DNA of 64,000 bases from Penicillus capitatus (Eukaryota; Plantae; Chlorophyta): assembly GCA_965649825.1 (NCBI GenBank), contig OZ287697.1:583635-647634 (forward strand), written 5' to 3'. Numbering within the stretch: the first letter of the stretch is position 1; every line of letters starts with the position of its first letter. The translations under genes and the position numbers were made by a program. Positions 5,280 through 62,692 of this stretch are shown here, piece after piece. The notes beneath the pieces were generated by a model. That model ran no database searches. It had not been told where the DNA came from and was given only the letters and a program-made list of their open reading frames with translations.

Positions 5280-7869
5280 ATGTTCTTCTCCGCCACGCTT
5301 CTCTGCCGCAAGACCGCTATCGGGGCGCTGTGGTCACCCACACTTACGCAATTTCGTTACTGACTGTCTTTCTTGCGTAGGATCTTGGCACACGGTAAGC
5401 GAATGAGCCGTCATGCCATCTTGGCTATCCACATCGACGACGCCTGGTGAGATACCTTCATCTTGTGCCGATCGCTGACGACGTTTTCTGAGCTGCAGTC
5501 GCAGAATTCAGACGCCCGAGGTGCCGCTTTCTCTCAGACTGCAGAGCATTTTGATCGGTCGGAGACCAATACCGGCGCATCTAACCGTCTGATGACGATC
5601 GGCACTGCAGGTGGACTGGTCCTTGCGTACAAGAAGCAGCAGGGATATCTCCTCGACGAACTGCGCAGCTTCACAGTACCTTCTGCCATGCCGCATGACT
5701 TAAGAGACAGATGTCTTCTGCAAAGTAGAAGAGGATCAATAACGCATGCGTTGATGCGGACGCTGTGAATAATCAATTGGTCAAGGAAGCGACGATTTTG
5801 CAAGAAAAGTGCGATACAGTGGAGTCGAGAAGAGGTCGATGAGATGGAGATCTTTGTGCAGATTGTTAGCAGTAACGAATCTGGAATCTGTGGACCAGCG
5901 AGTGACCTTACGCATCGGCCCACTAATGCACACTGGCGCGGATCTCTGTCCAGCGTTGCCCCAGGTATGTCAAATATGACCTTACTAACTCGACATCGCC
6001 GATGAGTGATGCAGAATGTTGATGAGTGGGAAACGGTACCAATTCTTCTTGACTCTGCCATGACACCATTGCCTAGTATTCTATGTTCTGAAGTGTATTC
6101 ATAAAACTATCCGCGAGATGTTTAGATGCTGTTGGTATGGATCCTTTCCTCTTGGATATTGGACAAAAGATGTCCGCTGGTCCGGATACACAGTATGTTT
6201 TTCATCACTCTTTTCATCACTGGGAGGAGTTCTGTCTGGTAACAAGGGGACAGATGCGTGAGGATCTTGACAAGGAGTTACCTCCATTGCCAGATCTGGA
6301 ACTTCTAAATGTGGACATGATAAATAATCAAGGAACAGAGCGACCTGGAATGGAGTGGATGCAGATTGATGAGCCAGACTTGCCGTACAATGTCACACTT
6401 CCACATGCTGACGTGGCAAACGATGTCCGTACTTCTGGACAACCTCCCAGAAAAACCACACCAGTGTTCAATCGAATTCACTGTCCCCGATGATCCTTTT
6501 TGCTTAGACGAGTGATACATCTTCTGAGGAAACGGCTAGACCGTTGAAGTCAAAAAGAAAGAGAAAACAGCGATACAGACTCGACAATCCAAACAACATG
6601 GTTATCAGTGACAGAGTAAGCAGTCCAGCAAAGGACATCTTAACAAACATATTGTGCAGCGTTATCGTCAGTGGTTGGACGACATGGAGGATCTGAAGGT
6701 CCACAAACCGCGTCGCAAACAGGCCAGATTGCATGAGAACGCGTGCCTGTCTATGCCAGCCACGATGCACCAGTCGGGACTCTGGGGTCGTCGTCTGATT
6801 CAGATCATCGAGAAACGCTTTGCATTGCACAAAGAGACGAAAACGAGAAAACTTCCACGGAAGAAGCAAGATACAGTCTTGCTCAATGCAGATTCTGAGA
6901 GTTCCATCTTCAAGAACGTCCAAGGTGTTGTGAGTTTCGTCTATTTTGATGCGACGTCATTGCCTGCAGAGATGTCATCGGTGATGGATATGATCGATCC
7001 AGCAGAGGCTCAAATGCACATCCCTCCAGTCCCAGACGAAACGTATGGATTTCAAATGGGTGGAGCATCGCAGGGAGAGGCTTCGATTCCATCCCAGATC
7101 GACAAGTCCCCTCGCGACATCTCTCTGATTAAGCTGACCGAGAGAACAACAATAGGTTACGTGCTGCCCTTTCTACTCCAATGACGGCTGCGCATCTCGA
7201 AATGGGCAAGACCCCTCCTGGGTCTAGTGTCCATCCACCAAGTAATGGTCCCAAATGCAACAGGAGCTTTCAAGAAGAGACGAAATGTCTTGTCTCAGAT
7301 GTACAGGACGGCAGCGATTTGAGTTCATTGAATCTGAGTCGCAGGACGCTGCGGCAAAGCAGTGGCAATCGAGGCACGCCGGGACTCAGTATTCTTTCCT
7401 GTACTCCCTCGTTCACCGAAGCCCCTCTTTTGCCCATCCTCGAAGAAGAACATCAGATTGGAGATGAGAACACCCATGGACTTCATTTATCATCTAGAAC
7501 GCCATTACCACCTCCAGCTGTTCATCAGAGTACCTTTGCCGTTATCGAGTGCTTCCCGAGAATTACATAGACAAGTGCCCTTCACTAACGAGCTCTCTGC
7601 CGTGGCACAGATGTTTGAGACAGAGACTGGAGGAAGATCAAATAAGAGAACAGCCTACAACATTTTTCCAGATCTCTTCCCATCTTTCTCGCTTCCAAGT
7701 GGCCAAACTCTTCTACCAGCTTTGCGGTATAGTATCCACACACTGTATGATATTCTCTTTATCTGTTTTGCTTGCTTCTTTGACAGTGATCTCTGCACAC
7801 GGTTTCGTCAGAGCGGAACAGGTCGGTGCTTTTGAAGACATTACCATCCTCCGCGGGATGCACATGTGA
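5280..7869 (+). CDS. REC8: Cohesin kleisin subunit, RAD21/REC8 family (probably REC8-like)
   Basis: Spliced N-terminus MFFSATLLCRKTAIGALW|ILAHGKRMSRHAILAIHIDDA...IQTPEVPLSLRLQSILI|GGLVLAYKKQQGYLLDE fits Rad21_Rec8_N. The C-terminus VAKLFYQLC...HGFVRAEQVGAFEDITI fits the winged-helix end. REC8 versus RAD21 is less certain. Confidence 0.85.
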
Positions 7870-8525: not shown

Positions 8526-9837
8526 ATGGGTTTCAACGGACTGATCGTCCATTCGACAAGAGGATCTTTTTTGCCTCTTCCTCGCAAGCCTCATCGTTCA
8601 CATCCTCAGCCGACCACACGTAAATCTGCCTTTCGACACGCTCAGGATGTGTTTGATGGTCGCCTGATGCAGGCCGGTGTGTGAGAGTCCACGCAGCAAA
8701 GAAAGAGAAATTTCTGTGGGAGGCATTGCGAGAGGCGATCGACGAAGAGATGGAACTCGATCCGAAAGTTCTCGTTATTGGTTGGAGCTTCCTCCCGCCT
8801 TCCATTTTACACACCTTGCGTCAATGCAGGAGAGGATGTGGGTCATTACGGTGGAAGTTACAAAGTCACATATGATCTTTACAAAAAATACGGCGAAATG
8901 CGTCTCCTCGACACCCCGATCTGTGGTGATGTCCTCACAGATCTTAATGCCCGGATGTGACGTTAGCTACTGACAGAGAACAGCTTCATGGGGATGGGTA
9001 TTGGGGCTGCTATGACAGGACTGCGTCCCATTGTGGAAGGCATGAACATGGGATTTCTCTTGCTCGCCTTCAATCAAATTTCCAACAACAGTGGCATGTT
9101 GCACTACACATCCGGCGGGCAATTTAAAGTTCCCATGGTGATTCGTGGCCCAGGAGGTGTGGGACGGCAATTGGGTGCCGAACATTCACAGAGACTCGAA
9201 TCATACTTCCAGTCCATACCTGGTGTACAGCTCGTGGCCTGCTCGACTGTCAGAAATGCAAAGGCCCTTCTCAAATCTGCCATCCGCAGCGATAATCCCA
9301 TCATCTTCTTTGAACATGTCCTCCTGTACAATCACAAGGGCGAAACAGAAGAAGGGTATCTTCAGCCATTAGAGAGAGCAGAGGTGGCGCAAGAAGGAAC
9401 AGATGTGACGATTCTGACCTACAGTCGCATGCGTTATACTGTCCTCCAGGCAGTGCAAGAACTGAAGAAGAGAGGCATCTCAGCAGAGGTCACTTCCCAA
9501 TAGCTTCCACTTCATTTTGTTCAGGCGTGCCTCTTAGGTCGTCGATCTCATCAGTCTCAAGCCGTTTGATATGGAGACGGTAGCGCGAAGTGTGAGAAAG
9601 ACCCGCAAAGCTGTCATCGTGGAGGAGTGCATGAAAACGGGAGGCATTGGTGCGTCACTCTCTGCGGTGATCTCAGAGAGCCTTTTTGACGACTTGGATC
9701 ATCAAGTGATCCGTTTGAGCTCTCAAGACGTTCCGACTTCCTACGCCCGTGAACTCGAAGCAGCCACTATCGTGCAGCCGGAAGACGTCATCCATGTCGT
9801 TGAGAAGATGATGGGGGTGACAGCGCACACCGTTTAG
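8526..9837 (+). CDS. pdhB: Plastid pyruvate dehydrogenase E1 beta subunit
   Basis: [19 protein letters not shown]|[35 protein letters not shown] and [11 protein letters not shown], with a transit-peptide-like N-terminus from ATG 8526. Confidence 0.96.
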
Positions 9838-9844
9838 TGTCTTT

Positions 9845-11742
9845 TCATTTTCGCCCTTTTGTACGATGCGTTTTGTTTTCCCTTGTTTGTTGTCGGCGTT
9901 CTTCTATCCATGTCTCTCGATCGATACCACGTTCGGCAAGCTCCTGTTCAAGCGCTTCTCTCTTGGCCTCTCGTTGCTGTCTCTTCTCTTTGACCCATTC
10001 CTGATACTTCTCCATCACATCCTGCACATCTCGGTGCATGGATTCATCATAGTTGACAAGCTTTAGTGCATCCGACCATTCCTTCCAATCCGGTAACTGC
10101 AAGAGGCGATTGACCTCAGGCAACATAACCTCTTCGAGAAAGCGCTTCTGGAGTGCTGATCCTCCATCTCTTAGCCGAAGTCGTTCGCCAGACCATTTGG
10201 AAACAACCGATTCTTGGCCTCTGTTCGCAGGAAAAGTTGCAAAATCGTTGTCAACTAGAACGAGTGGCTGCGGCAATGCCAGTGGCAGATGGATGCGGAT
10301 GCATGCCTTCAGACTGGCTTCCAGTACGGACAGTGAGATCAACTTCCTGGCAACAGCCACGCCCGCTCCAATCATATGACGTATCTGATGGAGCATAAAG
10401 GAACTGCCTTTCACTTCGCAACGGATGGCCATGGCACCTCCTGCGTCACAACATGAGAGCGTTTTTTGATGAAGGGAATAGATGTGCCTGGAATCAGAGG
10501 TGCAGGATCGGCTGCCGTAAAGCTCTGAATGCAACGGTAGTGTGGTGCCACAACTCTGTCCGAAGGATCGTCCAGTTCTTTGAACTCCAAATTCCAAAAA
10601 CGCCATCTTCCAGTTTCCTTCTCCCTCTGTAGCAATTCCTGCGTGGCATGGCCGTAGACTTACATCCAATCCAATGGGATATGACTTCGTAGTTAGGAGG
10701 AGTGGTGGATTCGCTGACCTCTTCCTCTTCGGGCTGACCCGTCTCCTCTTCCTCTTCCTCCTCTTCCACGAAACGGCGTTTCTGTCGATTTCTTTTTCCA
10801 TAGCTCCACGGATCGTGTCCATCAATGTATTGCTTCCGCTTTGTATAGTTATGAAAAGCGTGGCGTCCACAAAACATCTGAAGTGCCGTTCTGAATCGTT
10901 CAATGCACTCCTTTCCTTCCATCTCTCCCTATACTTCCTTTCAACTTCGCAACATAGATCTCACTCAATGCTCTCGAATCTCACATTTTCTGTTAGCAAG
11001 GAGAGGGGAACGTAGTAGCTGTATGTGCGTGATGTGCATGCCTTTCGTGCAAAGAACCCATCGTTTACTCTTTGAACCGAGAAGACCCGTATTTCAGGAG
11101 GTAGATGCGCTGAAATCTTCTCTGCCAATTCCAGCCCCTCCGGATCTCTGTCAAACATCTTCTCATCCACTAAACATTTCATAGCCACCACCTGTCCCAT
11201 CAGTCACTACGATCGACGATACATCAGGGATGAAAGATGTGACCGTGGCCAAGGAATGGACGCCTTTGTCTGTTCGGCTGCTCCGAGACCAGTTGATCTT
11301 GGAGAGGGAAACCGCATTCGATTCCGTCACGCAGCCACTGGCGCGGAGAGCCGCGAGCAAGACACTCTCAATCGTCTTGACGTGCTCCAATGAACTGAAC
11401 TGCAGACCTGCGCATCCTTTCTGATCGAAGGTGGTCTTGGACAGAAGTACGGAAGAGGTTACCGCTGTAGTCGGTACCGACGTAGCCGAGATGCAACCCC
11501 ACTTTACGCTTGACAAGGCCCGCTTCTTTTGCAGCTTGCTTTTCAGAAAGACGCCTGGCTCGTGTTTCTTCGTCGACGTCCATGTCACTCAATCTCCTCG
11601 AACGGGCATAAGTGAGGGACCAATGCTGTGCGGAAGGACGAGGGCGAAATGGTCGCCGAAAAGGAGTGCTTTCAGGCAGTGTCCTCGATAATAGGTGTAC
11701 GCGACGGACAAGCGGGCGCAGAGATGACGCAGATACAGACAT
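9845..11742 (-). CDS. PUS1: tRNA pseudouridine synthase, TruA/PUS1 family
   Basis: KRKVGLHLGYVGTDYSG, RSSRTDKGVHS (catalytic Asp), RTYSYYVP, HAFHNYT and SFMLHQIRHMIG. Confidence 0.92.
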
Positions 11743-48452: not shown

Positions 48453-49009
48453 ATGTATTCCTTCGTCTGCTATGAATTGAACAATACTGTTCACAACGTC
48501 TCCCTGTCACACAAATGAGAACTGTTGTCGTTGTGTCGTTAAGTGAGAAGACGTGACGTGAAGTTCGGTGACAGAGTGGTCGTATGTTGCGAGTTCTGTT
48601 CGGACGTCTCCGAGGACTGGCGTTCCTTTGTCCCAATGCTCTATTTCTTTGCCTTTGGTATGAACATGCACGACGTAGATTCGGTCGGCAAAAGACGGTG
48701 ACTGGCCTTCCTACAAGATAGGCACGCACATACAGACGGTAAGAAACGCCGCCGCGTATTGACAAGGACCTGCAAAAGTCTTTTCCGCGTAAAGTTCCAT
48801 GCGAAGTGATTCTCTTCGGACCACCACGCTTCGACACACAATGCGATTTTTCGCAGCTGCATTTCTCTCTGTATCACCCAGGAAACATCATCAGCGGCAT
48901 TTGATGTTTATCTCATAAGCGCTGATGTGACGTTTAGTCAGTATCCGCGAGGGACAACGTCAAGAATTTGCTCGGGATCGTTTTCGCAGAACCATTAGGG
49001 AAAGAATGA
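48453..49009 (+). CDS. Small multi-exon hypothetical protein (not in ORF track)
   Basis: Host-like intron signals (GTAAG donor near 48740, GATGTGAC...CAG at 48924-48941) join short exons into VVVCCEFCSDVSEDWRSFVPMLYFFAFGMNMHD|IGTHIQT|SFPRKVPCEVILFGPPRF...NIIS|VSARDNVKNLLGIVFAEPLGKE*. No homologue recognised. Confidence 0.35.
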
Positions 49010-49086
49010 AAGAATTGGACAACAACGTGCAAAAAGGAGTCCGCATAAATCAAGGAACCATTCCTGATGCAAGGCATCCAGGCATC

Positions 49087-49600
49087 TCATGCCAAGAACC
49101 CCAATCGCTCTCCGTTCTTCTTGGCCAATCGTATCACACCTTGTGCCTGTTTCTTATCGGCACCGACCACTTCGCAGAAACCCTTGATCACTAACGACGC
49201 CCATCCGTTGTCGCGGAGCCCGAGTGCGAAGTGAATGGACCTTGTGAGTGAAGGGCAATGGCTTTGCCTCGCAGTTGATTGAACTGCCGCTTTCCAACAA
49301 TCTCACGCGTCACCACCACGATCGGGGCAAAGGGCCCTGTCGTTGCTTTGTTCCCCATCTGTGTGACCATGCGCATAGGCGGCGATGGGGATAGACCTGC
49401 CGAACATCTCCCCTTCTGTGCGCATACGATCGTCGTCCTGGTATATCGTACGTGTGTTCGGTTGTCTGGGCAGCGAAGCCGGTCGACGGCGACAATGAGA
49501 GGAAAAGCGTCCGAGTGACGCCGTGTCCATTGCACAGACGTGGCGTCCGTCCATGGCATGACGAACACAGCTGCCGGTCGGAAAGGCACTATCACTTCTC
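49087..49600 (-). CDS. PGR5: Proton gradient regulation 5 (cyclic electron flow)
   Basis: MGNKATTGPFAPIVVVTREIVGKRQFNQLRGKAIALHSQ|VIKGFCEVVGADKKQAQSVIRLAKKNGERLGFLA* (stop 49087-49089). The start of the transit peptide is uncertain. Confidence 0.95.
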
Positions 49601-49727
49601 GAGGCATTCCCTCGTCGAAAGACCCTCTCACTGCCGTTCATTCTGAATCCGAATGCCGTGCTTCGAAGATCTCCTCCGTCCGCGACGATGATCTGTCAAG
49701 CAAGGACACGACGACAACAATCTGTTG

Positions 49728-51752
49728 TTAATGCACGAGTGTCTTGACGTAGAGCTGCGAATTGCGTCGCGGATCGATTCTGGCGGCGCGATGTGGCGGA
49801 AGGAGTGGACTAGAGTGTGCGGCGCCGGCTGCGACGAAGCCACGCTGAAGGAACCAATCCGCCGTCCGCGTCGTCAGGATGACGAGTTGACGCACGCGGT
49901 TCGTCGAGAGTTCCTGACATCCACGATCGACGAAGAGAACGCGAGAGGATGTGGGACTTACGCGTTCGATGTAGGTCAGTAGAGCGTCGCCCTTTCCTTG
50001 GCCGCGACAGTCGGGATGGATGCAGAGAGCTGAGAGCTCGGCAACGGAGAGTCCGTCATCCAGATGTTTGACCAGAGCGCAGCCCAGGATTCGGCGCTCT
50101 TTCTCGAACACTCTGAAATGCTCAACATCGCTTAACAACTCCTCGTAGCTTCGCGGGACAGTAATGCCGCTCTCGACAAGAGGTTTCAGAAGCTGCTCGA
50201 CAGAAAGGATGTCGGATGGGACGGCTTTGCGAATGCCTTCGTGAAAATCCGATGAGATCATTGAACCAATACCATCACGCGTGTACAGCTCCAGCAGCAG
50301 TCCTCCATCAACCTGGAGTCCACAATGCCAATAGGACACTCTGCCAAACTGCGTACTGTCGCGTCAATGAGGTGCGCTCGACGGACGCCGTGGTAGCATG
50401 AGAGGATGGAGATGATGAGGGAGGAGGGTAGATCTGCTTGGTCAGAGATTTCGTAATCCCACATCAGACGGTTTTTCCCTGTAGAATCGCCAGTGCCGTT
50501 GGCCTTCGTGCCTTCGCTCACGCGATCTCGTCGTAGCAAGGACGTCGTGACAGAGGGGAGTAGATCAAAGGCGCTGTCCAGCGGTAACCAGGTGGGGAGG
50601 TTCATGTTGCGGACATCTTCCAAATGCAGACAGATTACTTTGTCTGCCTTCAGCTACATGATGCACAGATTGTGTTTTGTATGTGGGTAGATGTGATGAG
50701 AGATGACCTGGACAGCTGTGTGGAATCCCACATCGAAGGTGCTGCAGTTCAGCACATCGCCTGCCGCAGAGTAACCTACATCAATACACCTGTCACGTCA
50801 GCAACAGATGCCGAGATATGTGGGCAAGAGACCCAGATTGTTTAGCAGGACGATGTTTTTGTCTTTGAGGAGATCAAGAATCGGCTGAGAAGCCACGAAA
50901 CGCACCTAGGACAGGAGACGATGCAGACTGTCGTCATTCAGCTGAATGAGATTCGCACATCGCCGGTCAATCCAAAATCGATGCCATCTACAATGCCACG
51001 GGCCTTCGCCGCCGTAAAGTTTCCGCTGACAACGCGGATCGCCATGTTCTGTGCTCGTATCCCGTGCCTTCTCATCAAAGGAACGGACGGTGCCTAGTGC
51101 AGCAAGAGGACGTCCGATCCGAAAAGGGAATCTGGTGATCGGACTCTCGAAAAGAATCCTTCCATCTTCATTCGCACCGAACTGGCGACGCGAATGGCGA
51201 CATCCAGTGCATCGACATCAGTGATTCTGTACTTTCCATGGAAGGTCGATGTTAAATGGTGTTCCTCCAGTGCACGATCGATGAGACATCGTGTGCCCAG
51301 AACCACGACTAACTGAACACCGAGGCCTGAAAACCACACCTCGGGTGTTGACTCCGTAAGCGAAACAGCAAACAGTGGAGGAGTTGCAGATCCGCCAACA
51401 ATGCATAGAAGAGAGTGTCCTGTGCAATGACCTGTTGATAAGGAGAGGTCAGCTGAGAGAAGGTACAGAAAGGGGACGGAGTGACCTCTCCAGGAATCAC
51501 CACAACAAAGAGACTCGCCGCATGTTCGACGATGTAGGGCGATGCCTGACGAAAGGACCCCACGAACGCCTGAAAGGCATTGCGTTCTTGAAGCGTCGCC
51601 GTTGCCTCGCGCTGCGCCGCCAGACGGTGACAGTGGTGTCGCTGTTGTCGAGGAGGGCGGCGCCGTCGGGTAACGGGATAGAGGGGGGATAACTGAAAGA
51701 GCGGAAGATTAAGTCGGTGGATGACACAGTGCATTGCAAAACTCATACTCAT
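49728..51752 (-). CDS. argA: N-acetylglutamate synthase (ArgA-type, kinase-like plus GNAT domains)
   Basis: FRQASPYI, LFVVVIPGE, LVVVLG, YRITD, GVRRAHLIDA, LLLELYTRDGIGSM, HPDCRGQGKG, ILTTRTADWFLQRGF and RNSQLYVK. Confidence 0.93.
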
Positions 51753-51951
51753 GGAGAGAAGTCGAAATAGTCATACAGCGTATGATGCCTAGGAAAGAAA
51801 TCCGACACCAAACTAAAAGCTCAAGGCTACGCAGCGATGATCTGAAACTATCAGAAGATGGCGGGTGTGATGGACAGACTCTACTACCTCGAAGACTCAA
51901 TCGATCAGACTATAAAAACGATTGAAAATGTCTTCTGCACGAATAAATTTT

Positions 51952-54917
51952 CTAAAACTCATCAATCCAGCTCCAAAGGTTCGTCCATGGGTGTTCCTTG
52001 TCAAAGAAATTGTTGCTTCGAGGCATTACAGATTTCCTAGGCGAATCGTAGAAATCAAAACAGGATGTGTCTGTTCCGTGCAGGAGTGTTGGAACGAACG
52101 GTGCCGTTTCTCTTTGACACTCCAGTCGATCCCAGTTCACTCTTCTGAACCATGGATGCGTCTTGATCTTGGCCAGATCATCATCTTCGTATCCTAACCG
52201 CTCTTCTGGCTTCACCTGAGACGACAGCGAGAGATAAGGTGTAAGAAAGAGTGCGTGGTCTGGCGTATACCTGAAGGAGTTTAGTAATTAAATTAGAGGC
52301 AGCTTGGGAAACGAATTCGGGAATGTAATATCTTCCAGACAGAATGCGTCGATGTGTGTCCCATCGATCGTCAGCTGGGGATTTGAACGGTGCATCTCCT
52401 GTCAGCATTTCGAAGATGAGCACGCCGAGAGCCCAGAAATCGGAAGCCTTTGACGCTCCCTGTCTTGAAATGATCTCAGGTGCCTGGTAGTCGGGCGTAC
52501 CGCAGACGGTCCAGGCGGAACCGTCAGCTAGCGTTGCAAAACCGTAGTCTGCGAGCTTCAAGTAACCATTCTTGTCAATAAGCATGTTTTCTGGCTTGAG
52601 ATCACGATAAATAATGTTCAGTGCATGCATTTGATCGTATGCCAAGATGACATTGGCAGCGTAGAACACAGCGTGACTCTCCGGTAGCCGACCCCCACTA
52701 TCAATAATCCGACTAAATAGCTCACCACCAGGGACCCAATCCTACACACACATGGCGACTCTATGGATTGTGGCTGTTCCATCTGAACGCACCATAAGAA
52801 AGTAAATGGATTGCTCGTCTTGGTAAGCTCCTTGAAGACTAACAAGAAATTTCCTGTTAGCTAATCTTGTCAGCACTTTTCGTTCCATGATGATGTGTTC
52901 GGCGTTCTTGTTATCTCTTATGGCTGCCTTCTGCATTGTTTTAAGCGCATACTGACTCCCAGTGGTTTTATGAGTGACAAGCCGGACAGATCCAAACTCA
53001 CCTTCGCCCACAACTCTATGCTGCTTCAAATCTCTGAAACAGATTTCAGGCCCTTCGTAGTTTGTTGGTTCGGCATTGATGATACGGGATGATAACTGTG
53101 GGGTGCTTCTCGATGGACAGGCTTGCAGTTCTTTTCTTATTCCAGCAGCGGCAAGCACTCTGTGTGAGATCTTGACCAACTGGACTCCGTCAGATGAGAC
53201 AACGACATCGACGTCAGATATCGTCTGGCGATTCCATCTGTACCCAAAAAACTGCCTCCCCTTATGACGCTTGATGATAGAGTGCGATGGACTATCGTGT
53301 GACCCGCAGACACTAACCTCTCCCTTCACGATCACATACAGATGCTCTATGAGTTGACCCGATTCCAAAATGGCCTCGTTTTCGGAGGCGGAAATAACTG
53401 GAGTCCTTCTAACAATTTCGGCAATATCGATGAGATCTGTATTGACAGTACCCAAAAACCCAATGATCTGTTGGAGAGCTTCTTCTATGATCAGTTTGCA
53501 GTAATCGATCCCTTCCAACTGCTGATAGATGGATGCATCAATGGCAATCCACTCAACCTCTGTCAATGCCTTGTAGTGGCTTTCTGCATCGGCAATGAAG
53601 AGATTCCCTCTGCCAAAAACGTGTTGTCTGTGGCGATGCGACTCATCCTCGACGCGGAGTCTTCCTTTTCGAATGATGTAAATCGTATTCGGATCCAGGT
53701 TCCAGATTTCATCTTTGGCGCAGTTATAGATCTGGGCTTTGTTTCCCAATTCGATGACTGTAGCATCGCTCACACTTTTGAGCAAAGGTAACTTTCGTAA
53801 GAATCTCAACATTCGGATCTTGGACACGTATTTAGATACGTCGATGAAATCGCTTCGATTGAGGGCGTAGAGGATGCAGATGCCAGAGGCAATGACAGAT
53901 GCTGTATGCGGAGAGTTGAACAGCAGCGTCGAATCTCCAAAGATCCAACCCGTCTGCTTCATCACTGTCTGCTTCGTTGCATGTGAACTCCCGGAGGTTT
54001 CTATCTGAACCTCGCCCCGTGCAACGTAGTACAGACAATCCGTCTCGCTTGGCATGTCTCCTTGACGAATGATTATTTCTTCGTCATAGTATACTTCACG
54101 CTTCATGCGAGCGAACAACTGAGTGACCACATGTCATTCATGGCATGAGGTATCTGGCTTGATCGTGGTGAGCCTACCTGTAGCAAGATGGTGTCGTCCA
54201 GTCCTTGGAAGACAATTGATTTTCTGAAGGCCTCCACGACGCGATCAGCAACATCGTGGGTGGCCGGATCTGTGTGGACAGGCGGTTGATTGCTTTCGGT
54301 ATGGCATTCCTCTGAATTCTCAGATGTCGAAGTCATCTCCTCAAGTTCGAGATCGTCCTGCAGCGGCAAGGGACGGTCAAGGCTAACAGAGAGAGCACGA
54401 TCGAGTTGTTACTTCGTTTGGAATGCCACCACGTCTTGTTCTCTGAGCTTTGGTGGGACTCCCCGTTTCTTCGTATGCCGACAGCGATACGCGGCCGCGA
54501 TCCGTTTCTTCCCCGCCATTCGGAACGGCGACCGAAGTAGAAAACGAGGTCTGTAGACAGACAGGTTTCGTGGCAGCGTGACGATAGAGGCGTCGTTCAC
54601 TTCGCTCGTCTCCGACGGCATTCTCTCGTCGTCGTTCGAGCAGCAAGACCGTTGCGCCGTGGTGTCGATGGCGCCGACGTGAATGGTCGATGACCCATGG
54701 GACGTCTTTGTCAGGCGACAACTGCCACTGCGAAAACAAAAGCCAGGCATAACTGAGCAAAACCCTGAACGAAGCAAATGGCTCACTTAACGTCACCTCC
54801 AATTGCGTTCTTTCCAGCCTTGGCGCGTTTCAGGTACCGAACTATGTGGTTGGCGGCGTTGTCACTGTTGACGTCGACACAAGCGGCCATCGCCGCTTTG
54901 CTGTTGCAGCATCCCAT
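51952..54917 (-). CDS. cGMP-dependent (PKG-like) protein kinase with cNMP-binding domains
   Basis: N-terminal MGCCNSK acylation motif, cNMP repeats (IIRQGD...LYYVARGEV, FGDSTLL), kinase motifs VGEGEFGSV, YALK, IYRDLKPEN, LADYGF and VCGTPDYQAPE, and an AGC tail. Confidence 0.88.
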
Positions 54918-55172
54918 GATACTAAATCACGCACGCGACGCTTCTTCTTTTCCTGAGACGTGAAGAATCTTGTTGTTAGCGAAGATGCGTTGTCGTTGGC
55001 GTTTCCGCTTCGGTGATGTCCGAAACGGATGATGCAGAATGGAACGTCGGTCACCGGTGACAACGACGTCGCAGGAAAAGAAGTCGGAAAGGTACGCGGT
55101 CGCTTCGTTCGATGCGAAGTCGTGAGACAGAGATGACTGGATCTGACGCACACGATAGTCGATCGGTACATA

Positions 55173-56090
55173 TTAAGTGACGCTTCTCGAGCGTCGTATA
55201 TCGGTCGAGCTAAGCTTCGTACCGCCGCCGTCTCCAACGAGACCGACGACGACCACCATCAAAGGTGCGAAGCCGCGGCGGCGTCGCGAGACGTTGATGT
55301 TCTCGGCACCCGGTTGTGTCTCCTTTGAAACGACAATGACTTGCCAATGCTCCTCAGTTTCGGCGGCGACAGGTGCATTGGGATCGCTAAGTACACGAAT
55401 GGACACTTCTAGACTTGGACGTACAGCTTGCACGAATAGCTTGACCGACTCGATCCGCTGCTCCAGCGACTGAATTTGACTATTATACTGCTTGTTTAGC
55501 AGATATTGATGATCTAGGAGCATCCAAACCACGATGTAGAATGAGATGATCTCCACGGAGAAAGTGTGACCTGTGACACCGATCAGGAGTCTCTTTTGCG
55601 ATACAAAGGCAGCGGCTGCAAGCAACAAACGATGTCCAGCATGCAGGTGATCAAATGTCCCACCCACCACACCACCGTCGTACACATGTCCCAAACTTTG
55701 GATCTCATATGTGGTATGGATGGGTGTATAGAGTGGGGTCGCTGCGCCTAGTACATTGAGTGGTTCTGCAAAGACAGGTCCCAAGTCCTGTCGCTGTCTT
55801 TCACTGTTGAGTCGGCTCAAGAAAAGACGGTCTTCATCAGACAGCGGAAAGGGAGCCGTGTACACAGTGGCCAATCCTTTCAGTTTGGCCAACTGAACTG
55901 CACACATCACAGAGGCGATGCCGAAGAGGGACAATCGGAAACATGAAGGGTTACGTGTTGTCCATCCACAGGATTCGAACAAGGGCACGAGGTTCATGGT
56001 GGGTCGCTTGGATGCGACGACGCTGTACCACTGCCTCAGTGTTTCGCACGTCGCCTGAGTATCTTCGACAGAGTCTTCGCCTTTGGCCAT
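55173..56090 (-). CDS. PPAT: Phosphopantetheine adenylyltransferase-like (cytidylyltransferase family)
   Basis: VVGGTFDHLHAGHRLLL, LLIGVT, IVVSKET, GAENINVSRRRRGFAPL and KLSSTDIR. Confidence 0.85.
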   Translation of the reverse strand: MAKGEDSVEDTQATCETLRQWYSVVASKRPTMNLVPLFESCGWTTRNPSCFRLSLFGIASVMCAVQLAKLKGLATVYTAPFPLSDEDRLFLSRLNSERQRQDLGPVFAEPLNVLGAATPLYTPIHTTYEIQSLGHVYDGGVVGGTFDHLHAGHRLLLAAAAFVSQKRLLIGVTGHTFSVEIISFYIVVWMLLDHQYLLNKQYNSQIQSLEQRIESVKLFVQAVRPSLEVSIRVLSDPNAPVAAETEEHWQVIVVSKETQPGAENINVSRRRRGFAPLMVVVVGLVGDGGGTKLSSTDIRRSRSVT

Positions 56091-57139
56091 GTAAGGGTTA
56101 TCGAAGAAACTGCCAGCAGCTATGGAAGGTACGTTGAGGGAGAACGTAGAGCGTTCTCTGGCATGATTCGCACGCGGCTCTCAGGCAATCTTTGTCGTCT
56201 GTTGCTGTTTGGCCGTAAAGCCGAAGCAATGCCATTGACGCGAAGCCTCAGTGACCGAGGCTGCTGCGGCGATTCACCTGCAGATTTACATAATAGACAG
56301 TATCAAATCGCGACATACACTTGCTTCGCGGTCGGCAAATGGGCGCGCATTCGAATGCTCGGCCTGTACCACACATTAAGAGGAGCATCCAGGTTCATTA
56401 AGCACGTAAGAGTTGACGGGTCGCTCGGAAGGAATCGACAAAAACGCGATGGAAAGAAAAGGAATGCACTTGGACGCAATCGCGTCACATTGTTTTCGGT
56501 CACTCGGCCGCCGTCATTTCAACTTTTTTCTCAGAATCCAGTGACAACATGAAGCAGAAGATGTTGGAAGAGTCAGTGAAAGTGTGAAAATGGTGTGCGC
56601 GATGCAGACGAAGATGACAATGATGGTCTGAAAGGGGCCTCTCAAAAAGGAAAACGGCGTCAAACCACGCTTTGAAGAAAACCGGCGTCATTCGCCGTTT
56701 GTTTTTAATGGACTTGCCGATGCAATATGTGTCGAAGGTGCCGAAGTGGTTGTCTATGTGATCATCTCTTGCGGCATCGAGACCATGTTCGGACAGTCAC
56801 ACTCGAAAGCGCCTTTATTCTATGGGGTCTGACCGTCATCGATGCATTTCGTGTTTGTTGTTTCGCCTCCGAAGAGTGCGCGCTCAAGTAGCAGGATCGG
56901 AAGGAGTTATTCAGCCTTGGTGGTCCGTCATGTAGAATTGTACGGCAAAATTCTCCACGTCAGCGTCCATTCAAGCCGTTTTTTTTTCGTTTTTGTTATG
57001 CGTCGATCGCGACGCCGTCATGATGGTTTAGAATTCTTGCACGCTGGCGAACGTCCAATATCCATTTACTCGTTTGTTTGTTCGTTTGTGAAGGGATTGC
57101 GGCCGAAGATGAAGGAGATGACAGAAATCTAAAGTATCT

Positions 57140-57470
57140 TTTTTGTGTCAAATCTTCGGTTTGCGATCTTGACAGCGGTTTTCATTCTTCGCCGCTCCAA
57201 TTGTACAGGTCGTGCAATGTATTCGCTTGGTTGTCGGCGATCTTTTATACATGGTATACACTCCTCGCGTTCGTCATGGCTCCAAAAACTGGGGAGCCCG
57301 TACGAACGGTCGTCAGTCGTGTAACGAAGTCAATAGCCGCGTTGGACCCACTAAGTGGGCAGAGAACGCCGAAATCACAAAAACAGAAATGCAAGAACAG
57401 TAGAGAGGTGGACAGCCAAAAAACTCGAACTCGCTCTGCCAATCGAAATCACTTCCGTCTGCCCCAGGAC
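57140..57470 (-). ncRNA. Candidate Fanzor omegaRNA scaffold overlapping the ORF 3' end
   Basis: Four consecutive stem-loops (57347-57359, 57268-57308, 57189-57240, 57146-57174) lie directly 3' of the RuvC-III/KPFIRP end, where TnpB/Fanzor omegaRNAs are known to lie. The boundaries are inferred. Confidence 0.55.
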
Positions 57471-60400
57471 GAATGAATGGCTTTTTCCGTCTTAGCCCAT
57501 AAAACTTCCTGATCGTCAAATTGAGCATGTTCATCGCCGCATTCTCATCCCTGTCTACAGCCAGCTTCTTCCGTTCAGATTCGCTTGTGGCAGGATGACA
57601 TCCCGGACAAAAGAGAAGACGAGTACTTGCCCGCGTATTACCGTTCTTCTTTGGACATCTGATTTTCACTTTCTTTAGCTCTTTGTTGCCACAATTTGTC
57701 GAGCAACACATCTTGGACGTGTGGTATTCGTCAATGAGAGTGAGCATCACGGGTCCAACACGATTCGTCTCTATAGCATGGGCTCTGCGTTGCACGGCTG
57801 CGTTGATGGCTTTTGCGAAGGCTGTGACGGGAGCTGCTTTGGAACCACGTGAGGCTGCGGCAAAATCGCCGTTTCCAAACCCCAAAACCATCGGCCGCAT
57901 GTCAGTCCGTGATCGGAGGTCAAGAATATTGTTTGCCAGTCGAGCTAAGGCTCCGGCACGTAGCCGATCGCTCCTCATCCTCATACGTGCCTTGAATGTA
58001 TTCGTTATGTACGCATTGACGAGAACGGCGCCGTGCTGTGCCTCGGTTTTCATGACCAATTGAACGTCCAGAGATTTTGCTGCCTCGATCTTCGCGTTCT
58101 CCGCCTTCACAAGACCCGGAGCCATCGACTTGTTGAATAGCATTCCTCTGCGACGCCTCCAACGATAGCCTTGGTCATAGTACCATCGGCGACGTGTATA
58201 CGTTCCAGTTATGGCCTCATCTGGTTTGAGTATCGTGTTCGGATGAGCTTTCAGCTCCAGTTCTTCCTCCTTTGATGCCTCTGTTATGGCAGTTAATGAT
58301 TTTGGCAAAGATCGCTTGGTCCCACGGCTGTTGCAATGTATTGATGCCATAATCTCTCTTCTAACTCCACGTGCAATGGTCGTTTGGCCTCTTTTGCGGC
58401 CTTTCCTACCATTTCTTCTTGTTGTTTCTTCTGGCCCTTCTAGTGAAACAGTCGATGCCGAGCGTTCTGTCCCATATTGCATCTCTTCCAAGTCGCCGCC
58501 CGTTCTGCCATGTTCGTTCCGGGTTTTGGCTTGAGAATGATGCCCACTTCTGCAATCGCCTGAACCACTTGGCGGTAATCGGTATTCATGCCCCAGAGTA
58601 ATGAGCGCACTCTTCGTCGTTGGTATCTGTCGCGTATAATCATCCCCGGGGGGCTAGTCATCATGACAGCGTCGGGAGGTCCGCGAGAAGGGATATCTTC
58701 CGGAAGCGGCGCTACTAGGTCAACACTAGCGTCTTCGGAGCTTCGCTGCGAGTCGTATATTCCCGCGTTATCGATGATCCGCTCTGCGCCTCGCTGTTGT
58801 AAATCGGAGGTCTCCGCCTGACGAAATCTGTTAAGGCGGTCTTCGAAGGAGGGATAGAGAGGCGCGTAGAGGATGGTGGCGCGTTGAACGTTGTGTTCTG
58901 CGTCGTGGTCCGCCAGGATGCAAGGTAAACAGAAAGTCTTAAAACACGTGTAAAAGACAAGAGTCCGTGCATAACCCCCCATTTATACCGCCCTGATGTT
59001 GCGACTCCACGAAGAAGTGAATCATCGCGCCACCCGAGCCAGAGAAGAGCGTCCCAAGACACAGTCGACAAGACATGCAGCGCCCCTGCGCACAGCTGAC
59101 CCTCACAGAACAAGACAACGTCACATCGCTTGGCGACAGTATCTTTGAAAATGCATTTCGTCTGTGTCTTCCTTCGACTGGTGGTTTTTTCCTTACGTTC
59201 TTGTTGAACGACCTTCTAACCTTTGAATTCGCTACTCGCCCAGTTGTCGTGGCATATCTTTCGTTCGTAGCAATTCGTATGCTTGCGGCATCTTCGGCCA
59301 GCATTTGAAATGCACGAGATGCTGACTCAGGCTGGTTGCTCGGACATTCTCTTTGTGCAGTCTCAGTTGGTCCGGCTTGCATTCGTGGTTCTTCCTCTAT
59401 CTCTGTCTCCCTGGCCCAAGTGACAATTTTTGCTCTTCCTGGATCTAATCCGACGAATATTGGCCGATCTTCGCATTCCTGACGAATGCGTGCAAAATCA
59501 GCCGCCGTGCAATAATACTCTGATTCCAGGTAGGCCGGTATTTTCTCTGACTTCTGTTCTTCAATCTTCGGTTTTTTGCTTGGGCGCTTTCTTTCTATTC
59601 TGGATTTCCTCGGCAATGGGAGCGTTGTTTGAGTCAAGTCTATGTCAGGGAAAACGCGGCTGGGAAGCACATTGTCTGCGTAGCTAACATTGAGGCAGAC
59701 CCGGACGCCATCCGTTGTGGCGGACTTCACACTTCCGGCTTCTAGGTGCTTTCTTTTGCCACGAATCCGCCATTTGCGGCGCCTTGATCTGATCTTTCGT
59801 GCCTTTTGTCGTCTACGCCGCATACGTTGACGTTTTCTTCGCAGCTTGCCCATGATCTTTCGCCCGAGAAAGAGCCCTTTCGTGAAAGAAAGCGTCGTTT
59901 GCTCGCGTAACTTGGAGAATGTCCTTTTCTCCATGTAATCTTGCCAGAGTGGTTTTCTTCGTTGCTTCGGACTTCTCGGGTGTTTACTCCCGCCTTCGCA
60001 AAGATTCTGTCGCTTTTCTTCTTGTCTGTCGATGAAATTCTTCACTGAAAACCCAACGGACTTGAGGTATTGCTCCGGATCGTTTTTGTAAAGCTGGCTT
60101 TTATGGAGATGTTCTTCGGAGTCTCTCAGCTCCCCTTTGCAGACGAAGAGATTTCTCAGCACTCTGGCGTCCAGCGTACAGTGTTTTCTGGCGAGTTTAG
60201 ACATTGGCATGACCTCCCGCCGCAAGACTCCGATTCTTGCAAAGAAGATATGGAGGCTGAACGATTCAGGCGTAACTTTCTCGGCCATTCGAGGCAGTGG
60301 CTTCGACAAGTCGCTGTGGAGTGTCCTTCGGATTAACTCAATCTGTTTCGCCGTGTCATCTTTCAGGCCGATATCGTTTTCCGGGGGCCACCTTCCAACG

Positions 60401-61421
60401 AGTAGCTTCACCGTCTCCTCTCCTTTGCGAGGCTCGAGTGAACGAACGTAGCTCTTCGCACATCGGATCGTGGAACTCCTGATGAACAGATCGATATTCA
60501 CCAGCATTTGTTTCGCTCCATATTGCAGAACTCTCCACCAGCCGTCCCGGAGCATCAACTTTGCGAACTCGGGTGATGGCTTCAGATGTCTTAGCGAGGC
60601 CTCGTGCTCTGCAAAAACAGCGTCAACGTCATCCGCAAGTCTTTCTTCGTTCTCTTTCTGCAAGTCCTTTTCATCCCTATCCTCTTGAGTTGATCTGCTT
60701 TTCCCCTTCGTCGTTCCCTTCAAGATGCTTCCTCTATAACCCGCACCATACATCTCTGGCATCAATACTCGCTGCAGAAAATTTATGATGTCTTGATCTG
60801 TCTCTTGTCGCGCTCTGGCATTGTTAATTCTTCGAACGACAAGGCGATGGCAATGCTCCAGAAACGTTGTCGGTCTTCTATCTCCCTTCGCTCTTGCATC
60901 CTCTGGATCCGGTGGCTGCCAACGCGGAGAGATTTTCAGTCGCTCTTTTGGTCATTGATAGGGCAGTGTGAAATGTCGATGCACATATGCATTAAGAATA
61001 AACCATGCTCGATATCGAATCTTCGAGTATTCGCACACCAGTCGGTGAATCTTTTCCCGTCTCGATTGTCCTTGAATAAGAGTGAAAAGGTAGCAAGATA
61101 AAGTCCTGAACCGGGTGGGGCACAGTGCCTCAAGGTCCTCAGGAGCTGCTAACTTGTGCACTTTGCAAAGCACAGAGGCTTCTCTCTATGTGTAGTTTTG
61201 GTAAACTCCAATTCCGTTTCGGCGACCCTATTCGCCATGCCTTCGCGAAGGATCTCAAGGAGCTGTTCGCGCTTCGACAATTTTCTCTGCACGCAGTCGT
61301 TTGTCTTCTGTTTTCGCGACGAACGCTGACTTACGTTTCTGGCGCCATTTTGTTGGACGCCTCCCTCTCCGCCCCTTTGTTGTGCGTTGGCAGGAAAGAC
61401 ATCATCCGTTGCTAAGTTCAT
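57313..61421 (-). CDS. Fanzor1: Fanzor1 (TnpB-like RuvC nuclease), split into segments: either spliced or partly pseudogenised
   Basis: RuvC-I IFVGLDPGRAKIVTW (Asp 59443-45), GTYTRRRWYYDQG, VLGFGNGDF...APV, RuvC-II IDEYHTSKMCC (Glu 57727-29), Zn-finger CCxxxC/CPGC, RuvC-III VDRDENAAMNML (Asp 57547-49) and a terminal RP. N-terminal FRTLSCYL...VCEYSKIRYRAWFILNAYV resembles Fanzor1 N-termini. Confidence 0.9.
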
Positions 61422-61703
61422 TGAACGCACTGCCGTTTTATCGAAACCGTAGAAAAATTCCGCGTGCTCGACACGAACAACCTAAAGCGATTCTGTCAAC
61501 GCTGTCGTTTAACGTGGCTTTAAAAGATTGATGGTGATATGGCCCTGATGTGACGGGCATTCGGCAGAAAGAGGTGACGGTTTTCATTGGTGTATGCTCT
61601 TTCACCTTGTTCGGAATCACGTCTTGCGTGATTGCGGAACAAAGATGATTTGAGACACAACGAACGTAACGGGTCACGTTGCGGTCGGGTAGGAGAAGAT
61701 TTT

Positions 61704-61941
61704 TGGGGATGGGTATTGGGGTTGCTATGACAGGACTGCGTCCCATTTGTGGAAGGCGTGAACATGGGATTTCTCTTGCTCGCCTTCAATCAAATTTCCA
61801 ACAACAGTGGCATGTTGCACTACACATCCGGCGGGCAATTTAAAGTTCCCATGGTGGTTCGTGGCCCAGGAGGTGTGGGACGGCAATTGGGTGCTGAACA
61901 TTCACAGAGACTCGAATCATACTTCCAGTCCATACCTGGTG
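61704..61941 (+). pseudogene. pdhB: Duplicated pdhB exon fragment (copy of 8989-9225)
   Basis: Direct alignment of 238 vs 237 bp shows 4 transitions and 1 inserted T (cccatttgtgg vs cccattgtgg) that frameshifts the copy. Confidence 0.97.
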
Positions 61942-62207
61942 CTCTTGCAGTGCGTCCTGTATCCATGGACAGCCGTAAAGGTTCTTCATATCCAACATGC
62001 GTTTTATTCTGGACACCATTTCCGTCGGATCTTCGACCTGCGTGTGATGTGTGGTTTGAAAGATCGGGAAGGAATGATGCAGGTACCGAGATATCCACTG
62101 CTTGCTTCTCTTTGGCAACGACATAGACTGTTTCCATCATCTGCATACCGATGCCTTTCTGCTGATAGCCAGGTAGGACGAAGATCTGACCGATGCGATC
62201 GCGATGC
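61942..62207 (-). pseudogene. HAT1: HAT1 (type B histone acetyltransferase) gene fragment with retained intron
   Basis: [37 protein letters not shown]|[20 protein letters not shown] matches HAT1 motif A and DITVEDP. The 49 nt GT-AG intron is at 62038-62086. Neither end of the gene is present. Confidence 0.85.
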
Positions 62208-62692
62208 CTGTCGGGGAGTTGTTTCTTTTGAACCGCGTGTGTCACATGACATTCAAAGCGCCGACAAAACCCGGTAACCTTTGGATCATAAGATGAATGT
62301 CTTTTCTGGTGTGTTCGTGCATTTTTTTGTTTTTGGCCTTTCGTGGCATTTCAAACGAACTTACGCCAAATGAATACAGCCGCCGTAGTGCAGGCTTCGT
62401 TAATCGACGATTGGGCCAATTGTTGTTATCGCACTGTAAAACAAAAGATATCGACCACTCGTTCAAAAGCACTTCAGAAAGTGCTAGCTGTCATTCGACT
62501 GGCCCTTTAAGTGGACACGTGCGCAAGGAGGCTGGCTGGTTGTTAACTGTTTTTATTTGCGCGTTCATTTTGATCTTTATTCTCCCGGTTGCGTGTTGTC
62601 CATTTTGGCCGTTACGAACCGTACGATTCTTTCATTCTGCTCCACTCACTGAATGTGATATCTCCGTTTGTCTTGACTCTTCAGATCTCAAG

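Follow-up and report, generated by a model that had tools for sequence, protein, structure and literature searches.

The locus described here raises the question of how pieces of two host genes came to lie immediately upstream of a gene for a Fanzor nuclease, and whether they are the cargo of a mobile element. Within the TnpB/Cas12 lineage, Fanzor nucleases form the eukaryotic branch, and to our knowledge their entry into genomes and their persistence there are poorly documented. The locus is contained in a stretch of 64,000 nucleotides, the whole of the DNA that was analysed (hereafter the window), which is part of contig ctg340516_41x_l (1.46 Mb, 41x coverage) of the metagenome assembly ERZ25074695 in the European Nucleotide Archive (ENA). 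In the original prediction, made from these letters alone, the Fanzor gene, a candidate omegaRNA, the DNA upstream of the gene and fragments of the host genes pdhB and HAT1 were taken to be a non-autonomous gene-capturing element, Helitron-like or Pack-like, that might in other copies program guides against its host. The analysis presented here favours a different origin: the pdhB and HAT1 pieces are probably filler, copied from templates during the repair of a break, by which a Fanzor insertion was closed at its 5' edge, rather than transposon cargo.

A lineage-specific block and its empty site

The Fanzor open reading frame (ORF), its upstream DNA and the pdhB and HAT1 fragments are contiguous, as had been proposed, in the 6.6-kb gap between a PPAT-like gene (CTP_transf_like domain; start codon at 56090, minus strand) and a gene for a DUF1997 protein (start codon at approximately 62694, plus strand). 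A sister species (assembly ERZ26696514; contigs L006 and L007, at 180x and 93x coverage) keeps the gene order PKG, PPAT, DUF1997, ceramidase at 80-87% identity and lacks a counterpart of approximately 57238-62205, a block of 4.97 kb of which each boundary is ambiguous by a few base pairs. Positions 21-8478 of L006 correspond to window positions 48749-57200, and positions 8535-8831 to 62210-62514; fine alignments place the ends of the block at approximately 57238 and 62206. In place of the block the sister site has 11 unmatched base pairs, TAAAACCCTAC, so that approximately 11 bp of target are missing here. Of the element span first put forward (57140-62500), approximately 57238-62205 stands, while 57140-57237 and 62216-62500 are both host flank. 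Comparison with the empty PPAT-DUF1997 site, which had been suggested as a check, shows that both host pieces are absent together with the Fanzor; a site with the pieces and without the Fanzor was not seen. L006 and L007 are approximately 97-99% identical to each other across the locus and are probably two haplotypes, both with the empty site.

Within the block, read on the minus strand, the Fanzor ORF (57313-61421) is preceded by 275 bp of upstream DNA (61422-61696; estimated earlier at about 280 bp) and followed by 75 positions past its stop codon (57238-57312). Two low-coverage contigs of the same assembly provide minor haplotypes, both of which share the upstream region: L003 (5x, 5.8 kb) comes from the same locus and includes the DUF1997/ceramidase flank, and L001 (2x, 3.2 kb) is a Fanzor variant without an independent flank. 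The upstream region of L003 has a 44-bp deletion beside the junction.

Copies of pdhB and HAT1 and their junctions

Both fragments are recent true copies of host genes, with parents identified at 97.5-97.9% identity, and their coordinates place them on the 5' side of the Fanzor, away from the guide end; on these two points the original prediction was correct. The pdhB copy (61704-61941, plus strand, antisense to the Fanzor; 238-245 bp in length) is 97.9% identical over 238 bp to positions 8989-9225 (plus strand) of the same window, which lie inside exon 3 of an intact pdhB gene (approximately 8690-9838), and it matches Pfam Transket_pyr (E = 7.5e-10) and the NCBIfam model of PDH E1-beta (E = 1.5e-16). 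Its parent is 52.7 kb to one side on the same contig, in the same orientation as the copy. The HAT1 copy (61932-62215, minus strand) aligns without gaps to the real HAT1 gene on the same contig (L004, positions 6073-6356), with differences at 7 of 284 positions (97.5% identity); this parent, which has Hat1_N and GNAT ORFs, is 79.4 kb beyond the opposite side and likewise has the orientation of its copy. The chance of finding both parents in cis within 80 kb on the 1.46-Mb contig is approximately 4e-5 by our own arithmetic, assuming a genome of at least 25 Mb.

The HAT1 copy consists of part of an exon, a complete intron of 49 nucleotides, the next exon and 4 nucleotides of the following intron. 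Because it holds an intron, it was copied from genomic DNA and not from RNA, and a retrocopy origin is ruled out; the same test is uninformative for the pdhB piece, which falls within a single exon. A GNAT gene inside the window (49728-50339) was also considered as the parent of the HAT1 piece and was rejected, as it has no DNA similarity to the piece and the true parent is elsewhere on the contig.

The match to the pdhB parent continues until 61941 and the match to the HAT1 parent starts at 61932, so that the two pieces are joined at a 10-bp exact microhomology, ATACCTGGTG (61932-61941), that is present in both parents. The HAT1 parent in turn matches until 62215, and homology to the sister flank begins at 62206; across this second junction (62206-62215) the HAT1 parent reads GCCTGTCGGG and the sister empty site GCCGTCGGG, with 6 bp exact and 9/10 positions shared if one indel is allowed. 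The HAT1 copy therefore overlaps the native flank, and there is no element terminus outside the cargo. The junction between Fanzor DNA and pdhB is at 61697-61703; microhomology was scored at the other two junctions.

Search for transposon termini and further copies

Helitrons are recognized either by 5'-TC...CTRR-3' ends with a 3' hairpin or by a 5'-T, asymmetric terminal inverted repeats (ATIRs) and two hairpins, and they insert at A|T or after TTTT without a target-site duplication (TSD). A CTRR end was found at neither end of the block in either orientation, and end-to-end similarity of the ATIR kind was at the level of chance. The hairpins at the block ends comprise short ones of 5-6 bp and one of 13 bp that is interrupted. 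Terminal inverted repeats (TIRs) between 57.2 kb and either 61.7 or 62.2 kb did not rise above chance, and comparison with the sister site revealed no TSD. Nor does the locus resemble a Pack-MULE or Pack-TIR element, as the pieces have no enclosing inverted repeats or TSD and the HAT1 copy directly abuts the flank. In the Fanzor-sense orientation the sister empty site reads GGGTTTTA|CCAAC, which places TTTT at the insertion point, but the 5' junction consists of filler and the target has lost 11 bp. The block may include a truncated Helitron2 that has lost its 5' terminus. The features expected of templated insertion or gap filling are present: the parents persist in cis, and the junction microhomologies (10 bp; 6 bp, 9/10) are beyond chance.

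The original prediction also implied copies with shared termini across the genome. At the protein level, the collections searched (15 billion proteins) contained no copy of the Fanzor outside this locus: a word-based search of 5.8 billion clusters gave P0001 as the sole match, and in an exhaustive HMMER search the relatives other than the window's own protein, L001 and L003 reached at most 39% identity. The ORFs of the region are singletons or are paired with L003 alone, and two exact-pattern scans of Joint Genome Institute (JGI) metagenomes and one of IMG/VR detected no related loci; the IMG/VR scan gave no viral relative of the Fanzor. A mobile, non-autonomous Helitron-like or Pack-like element with cargo is thus unsupported: there is a single locus without TIRs, TSD or a CTRR end, its junction with the flank has microhomology, the parents of the pieces are in cis and the nuclease gene is broken. 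With the gene in this condition, the idea that captured DNA could program host-targeting guides is moot for this copy.

An island of allelic divergence and similarity to the pdhB locus

The window haplotype and L003 differ by approximately 3.5% across 58302-61941 (L003 1-3051) and by only 0.33% across 61942-64650 (L003 3052-5763), a difference in rate that is highly significant (p = 2e-20). The divergent stretch, approximately 10-fold above its flanks, consists of the N-terminal two-thirds of the Fanzor ORF, the upstream region and the pdhB copy. L001 is equally far from the window and from L003, both minor contigs stop exactly at 58302, and ten neighbouring host genes had no minor-haplotype partners. 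By sequence comparison, 58302-61941 appears to be an island of old alleles with sharp boundaries, set in chromosomes that are nearly identical, and its excess of divergence carries signs of protein-level selection. Hypermutation (resembling repeat-induced point mutation, by CpG deamination or in strand-coordinated clusters) was rejected as the cause, the spectrum of changes being ordinary, with few CpG transitions and a ratio of non-synonymous to synonymous polymorphism (pN/pS) below 1; sequencing error was rejected also, given that divergence is no more than 0.33% in the flank carried by the same 5x contig.

L001 shares the junction between Fanzor DNA and pdhB, but its pdhB part (L001 1-337, corresponding to window 9318-8982) is identical to the parent gene (0/329 changes) and continues past 61941. 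This contig probably records the junction of a 52.7-kb duplication or circle, formed by ectopic recombination between copy and parent, or else is chimeric.

At the other end of the block, positions 57218-57254, which extend across the left junction, are 86% similar to 9874-9912 (score 38, where 40 shuffles reached 33 at most). The latter stretch lies 36-74 bp past the stop codon of pdhB, within the C-terminal tail of a convergent pseudouridine-synthase ORF. The last 10 bases of flank at the left junction are identical to this pdhB 3' site, whereas the sister has only 7/10, although the native flank of the sister also resembles the stretch. Further copies of the left-junction motif were not found by nhmmer in the DNA examined. 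As to the arrangement of the genes themselves, the tRNA pseudouridine synthase ORF (9845-10903, minus strand) converges on pdhB (8690-9838, plus strand) and its stop is only 7 bp beyond that of pdhB, so that the 3' ends overlap or almost do so.

Origin of the block: probable templated repair and its alternatives

We infer the pathway of repair, the order of template switches and the number of events (one or two) as follows. Approximately 4.5 kb of foreign DNA with an intron-less Fanzor1 gene (approximately 57238-61696) would have entered the PPAT-DUF1997 intergenic region after the split from the sister species. Its guide-side 3' end would have been joined to the chromosome almost directly, and its 5' end through error-prone, template-switching repair of a break, at the time of integration or afterwards in the same place. 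The free end would have copied approximately 240 bp of pdhB exon 3 from 52.7 kb away, jumped by means of the 10-bp microhomology to HAT1, 79 kb away on the opposite side, copied 284 bp there, intron included, and returned to the other chromosomal end through the microhomology of 6-10 bp, with loss of approximately 11 bp of target. The pieces would accordingly be junction filler made in situ, of the type ascribed to polymerase-theta end joining, synthesis-dependent strand annealing (SDSA) or microhomology-mediated break-induced replication (MMBIR). This reading is adopted because the product is single-copy, the parents are in cis, there is microhomology at the switch points, target has been lost and no termini enclose the pieces. 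All five of these features also fit filler DNA from end joining or template switching. Single-copy products, bias toward cis templates and microhomology were likewise the basis on which gap filling independent of transposition was recognized in Pack-TIRs (Tan et al. 2021, PMC8277862). Arrival of the Fanzor DNA by truncated, one-ended transposition of the Helitron2 type, with the 5' end closed by the host, would be compatible with the repair model.

Several observations weigh against templated repair as set out above. Comparison of the window with L003 shows differences at 5/238 positions in the pdhB copy and at 0/274 in the adjoining HAT1 copy (Fisher's exact test, p = 0.02), which argues that the two do not have a single simple shared history, so that two events or later recombination fit better than one event. 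In L001 the 5' end of the Fanzor is joined to parent-identical pdhB beyond 61941, possibly a second genomic context. The likeness of the left junction to the 3' flank of pdhB is not predicted by the repair model. TTTT at the insertion point of the sister, in the Fanzor sense, is as in the Helitron2 elements with Fanzor1 of Chlamydomonas (PMC3627910).

Some of these observations would be expected of a rather unlikely alternative, one-ended (IS91-type) transposition of a Helitron2-like element with transduction, in which copying from the 3' end of a donor beside pdhB overshot the 5' terminus into pdhB; HAT1 would have been added by a second round or as filler, and the composite would be, or would once have been, a mobile unit. 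CRe-1, CRe-2 and CRe-3 of Chlamydomonas have intact 3' ends and ragged 5' ends, are inserted after TTTT and in some cases have extra 5' sequence (PMC3627910). The host here is green-alga-like, the best named relatives of the DUF1997 protein and of the Fanzor being from Caulerpa, and the sister site offers GGGTTTTA|CCAAC in the Fanzor sense. Subterminal hairpins exist, sequence related to the pdhB locus is found at both ends of the foreign DNA, and in L001 the 5' end runs on into 329 bp or more of pdhB sequence identical to the parent. The last point turns the other way on closer comparison, however, as the pdhB part of this 2x contig is unchanged over 329 positions whereas its Fanzor part has diverged by 3.4%, a combination much more probable under recombination with the parent gene (approximately 0.25 in a simple model) than if the pdhB part were an old donor flank (approximately 0.001-0.005). 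Transposition of this kind would also demand two successive local hops for the two cis parents, and the 10-bp microhomology between the pieces and that with the flank are not products of RepHel joining; moreover, the searches gave neither a copy elsewhere nor shared termini, and no CTRR end, ATIRs above chance or TSD. The uneven allelic divergence, in which the HAT1 piece shares the low value of the flank (0/274) and the pdhB piece the high value of the Fanzor block, would suit unrelated events at one fragile site, such that the HAT1 patch, or both patches, would have formed at an intergenic break independently of the Fanzor, itself inserted alongside before or afterwards, and their adjacency would be coincidental. 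The 10-bp microhomology could equally well have joined a pdhB-tipped end to a resident HAT1 patch, but coincidence seems unlikely where the sister lacks all three components at an otherwise conserved site, where the components abut with no native sequence between them and where the pieces are about equally diverged from their parents (2.1% and 2.5%).

It is quite improbable, in our estimation, that the Fanzor and pdhB together form a cassette, present or past, whose spread or exchange, from locus to locus or from genome to genome, depends on break-induced copying. In this scheme RNA-guided cleavage where the sequence is like the right-end flank would set off one-ended, homology-driven copying of the element together with its donor flank, and microhomology patches would close the far end. 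Such a cassette would tie together the likeness of the left junction to the pdhB 3' flank, the pdhB copy at the other end, the L001 junction and the 10-fold excess of allelic divergence. An assembly artefact in which reads were mis-joined through short repeats is hardly credible: this is a metagenome assembly in which low-coverage variant contigs of the locus exist, but the contig itself has 41x coverage, the independent 5x contig L003 has the same pdhB/HAT1 and HAT1/flank junctions, and the copies are marked as distinct loci by 5 and 7 differences from their parents.

The Fanzor gene and its decay

The Fanzor ORF begins with an ATG at 61421 and ends with a stop codon at 57313-57315 on the minus strand, and in the window its TnpB-like frame appears in three pieces. 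The RuvC-I, RuvC-II and RuvC-III motifs were identified as FVGLDPGR (59457-59434), LIDEYHTSK (57738-57712) and DRDENAAMN (57555-57529), with a C4 zinc finger (CCSTNCG...CPGC) at 57708-57598. The motif of Bao and Jurka (2013), [TS][TS]-x-x-C4 zinc finger followed by RD, is present as HTSKMCCSTNCG...CPGC...DRD. The exhaustive HMMER search yielded 114 relatives at 25-39% identity, mostly of 570-860 amino acids and aligned at their C-termini. When 27 of these relatives are aligned with the window protein, the catalytic glutamate and aspartate (E255 and D315), the four cysteines and neighbouring residues are invariant, and 17 of the 28 members match Pfam Cas12f1-like_TNB. The window protein alone gives only sub-threshold matches (Pfam Cas12f1-like_TNB, E = 0.013; NCBIfam guided_TnpB, E = 0.0012) and, as a single sequence, has no match in the PDB. 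The family profile, when compared with the PDB, matches Fanzor1 of Parasitella parasitica (9cf0, E = 2.4e-7), mimivirus L79 (9b0l, 2.2e-5) and Fanzor1 of Spizellomyces punctatus (8gkh, E = 1.2e-3), and by hhalign the RuvC-I region of the window fits the family profile at a probability of 94.7%. A single-sequence AlphaFold2 model was unusable (predicted local distance difference test, pLDDT, 36.6). The protein, which is extended at length at its N-terminus and contains approximately 200 amino acids of low-complexity insert, belongs to the Fanzor1 family as a divergent member.

The majority consensus of the three haplotypes, with the 3' part supplied by the window, is one open intron-less frame of 1,197 codons from 61421 to 57313. 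The haplotype of the window is disrupted by four private lesions. Three of them, located by three-way alignment of the haplotypes, lie in the N-terminal part (60952-61197, minus strand): a 1-nucleotide deletion at 61197 and two nonsense codons, TGG>TAG at 61186-61188 and CGA>TGA at 60952-60954. The fourth is an insert of 516 bp (58629-59144) with stop codons and the 6-bp repeat AGATAC at both edges. Introns were considered as a means of joining the three minus-strand frames and were rejected: the 516-bp segment does not have GT-AG ends and is missing from both L001 and L003, and the frame runs through without it. A source for the insert was not found, and a Pfam search with ORFs of the insert and of the upstream region gave nothing. 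The insert has a weak inverted end of 5 bp (GTCGC/GCGAC). The Fanzor of L003 has two different nonsense codons and one frameshift. Among the haplotypes, pN/pS is 0.17-0.21 pairwise and 0.28-0.62 per branch. Values below 1 together with the lesions lead to the conclusion that the gene was formerly under selection and is now decaying; as read from these sequences, purifying selection acted for part of its history, with decay in at least two of the three haplotypes seen.

The window sequence is eukaryotic, with short GT-AG introns and approximately 49% G+C. The green alga Caulerpa lentillifera provides the best named relatives of the Fanzor and of the DUF1997 protein (57% identity for the latter), so that the host, too, is probably a green alga. 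Introns are absent from the conceptual Fanzor ORF, whereas neighbouring host genes have many short ones; their absence hints that the gene arrived recently from a source poor in introns.

The 3' end

The guide of Fanzor systems comes from the 3' flank (PMC10432273). At this locus the candidate guide would be CGCCGACAACC... on the minus strand, and the 3' end of the putative foreign DNA (57238-57312) is the expected place of the end of an omegaRNA. The candidate omegaRNA of the original prediction was not supported: a search of Rfam gave no match in the Fanzor 3' region, folding was no better than that of shuffled sequences (z-scores of -0.23 and -1.64), and 57140-57237 is host flank conserved in the sister. 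Once the host flank is removed, one good hairpin remains, the interrupted one of 13 bp; comparison is limited by the fact that one copy of this 3' end is known.

Comparison with known systems

The Fanzor1 genes of Chlamydomonas reinhardtii are carried by Helitron2 elements of the non-autonomous kind, CRe-1, CRe-2 and CRe-3 (Bao and Jurka 2013, PMC3627910). The locus described here resembles these in having Fanzor1 in a green-alga-type host, a defined 3' end, a ragged 5' end with extra 5' sequence and perhaps a TTTT target. The CRe families occupy 35-150 loci and have shared Helitron ends, variable TSDs and 5-10 exons (PMC3627910), whereas here there is one locus without recognizable Helitron ends or TSD, and an intron-less ORF of approximately 1,200 amino acids whose product is at most 39% identical to other proteins. 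With the solved Fanzor1 nucleases 9cf0 and 8gkh the family profile aligns over the TDGVG/RuvC-I and IDEFRT-CxxC...CxxC-RDxxAxxN segments; unlike them, the present protein has no PDB match as a single sequence, has the long N-terminal extension and the insert of approximately 200 amino acids, and is encoded by a disrupted copy.

Gene capture by Pack-MULEs and Helitrons of plants is similar in that a mosaic of host fragments, one of them with an intron, is linked to a transposon-associated gene, but TIRs, a TSD of 9-10 bp, 5'-TC...CTRR-3' ends and multiplication are absent here and the parents are not dispersed. The locus is a caution: host fragments beside a Fanzor should not be assumed to be transposon cargo or a means of making guides against the host. 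It offers a base-resolved view of the arrival of one Fanzor, with an empty sister site, a defined guide-side end and a 5' end probably sealed by templated copies. The 10-fold excess of divergence of the Fanzor block among co-occurring haplotypes, if real and general, would be new information on the population biology of such elements.

The event itself would be a new example of known processes. Like templated insertions and Pack-TIRs (PMC8277862), it involves short copies with surviving parents, cis templates tens of kilobases away, several copies in a row, microhomology at the switch points, a small loss of target without TSD, and a single-copy product at or in a transposable element. Pack-TIRs have their filler enclosed by both TIRs of a resident element, whereas here it lies at the outer 5' edge, bridging to the chromosome, and its neighbour is a Fanzor gene and not a TIR transposon. 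An algal example is added to the evidence that mosaics of transposable-element and host DNA can come from repair and not from transposition.

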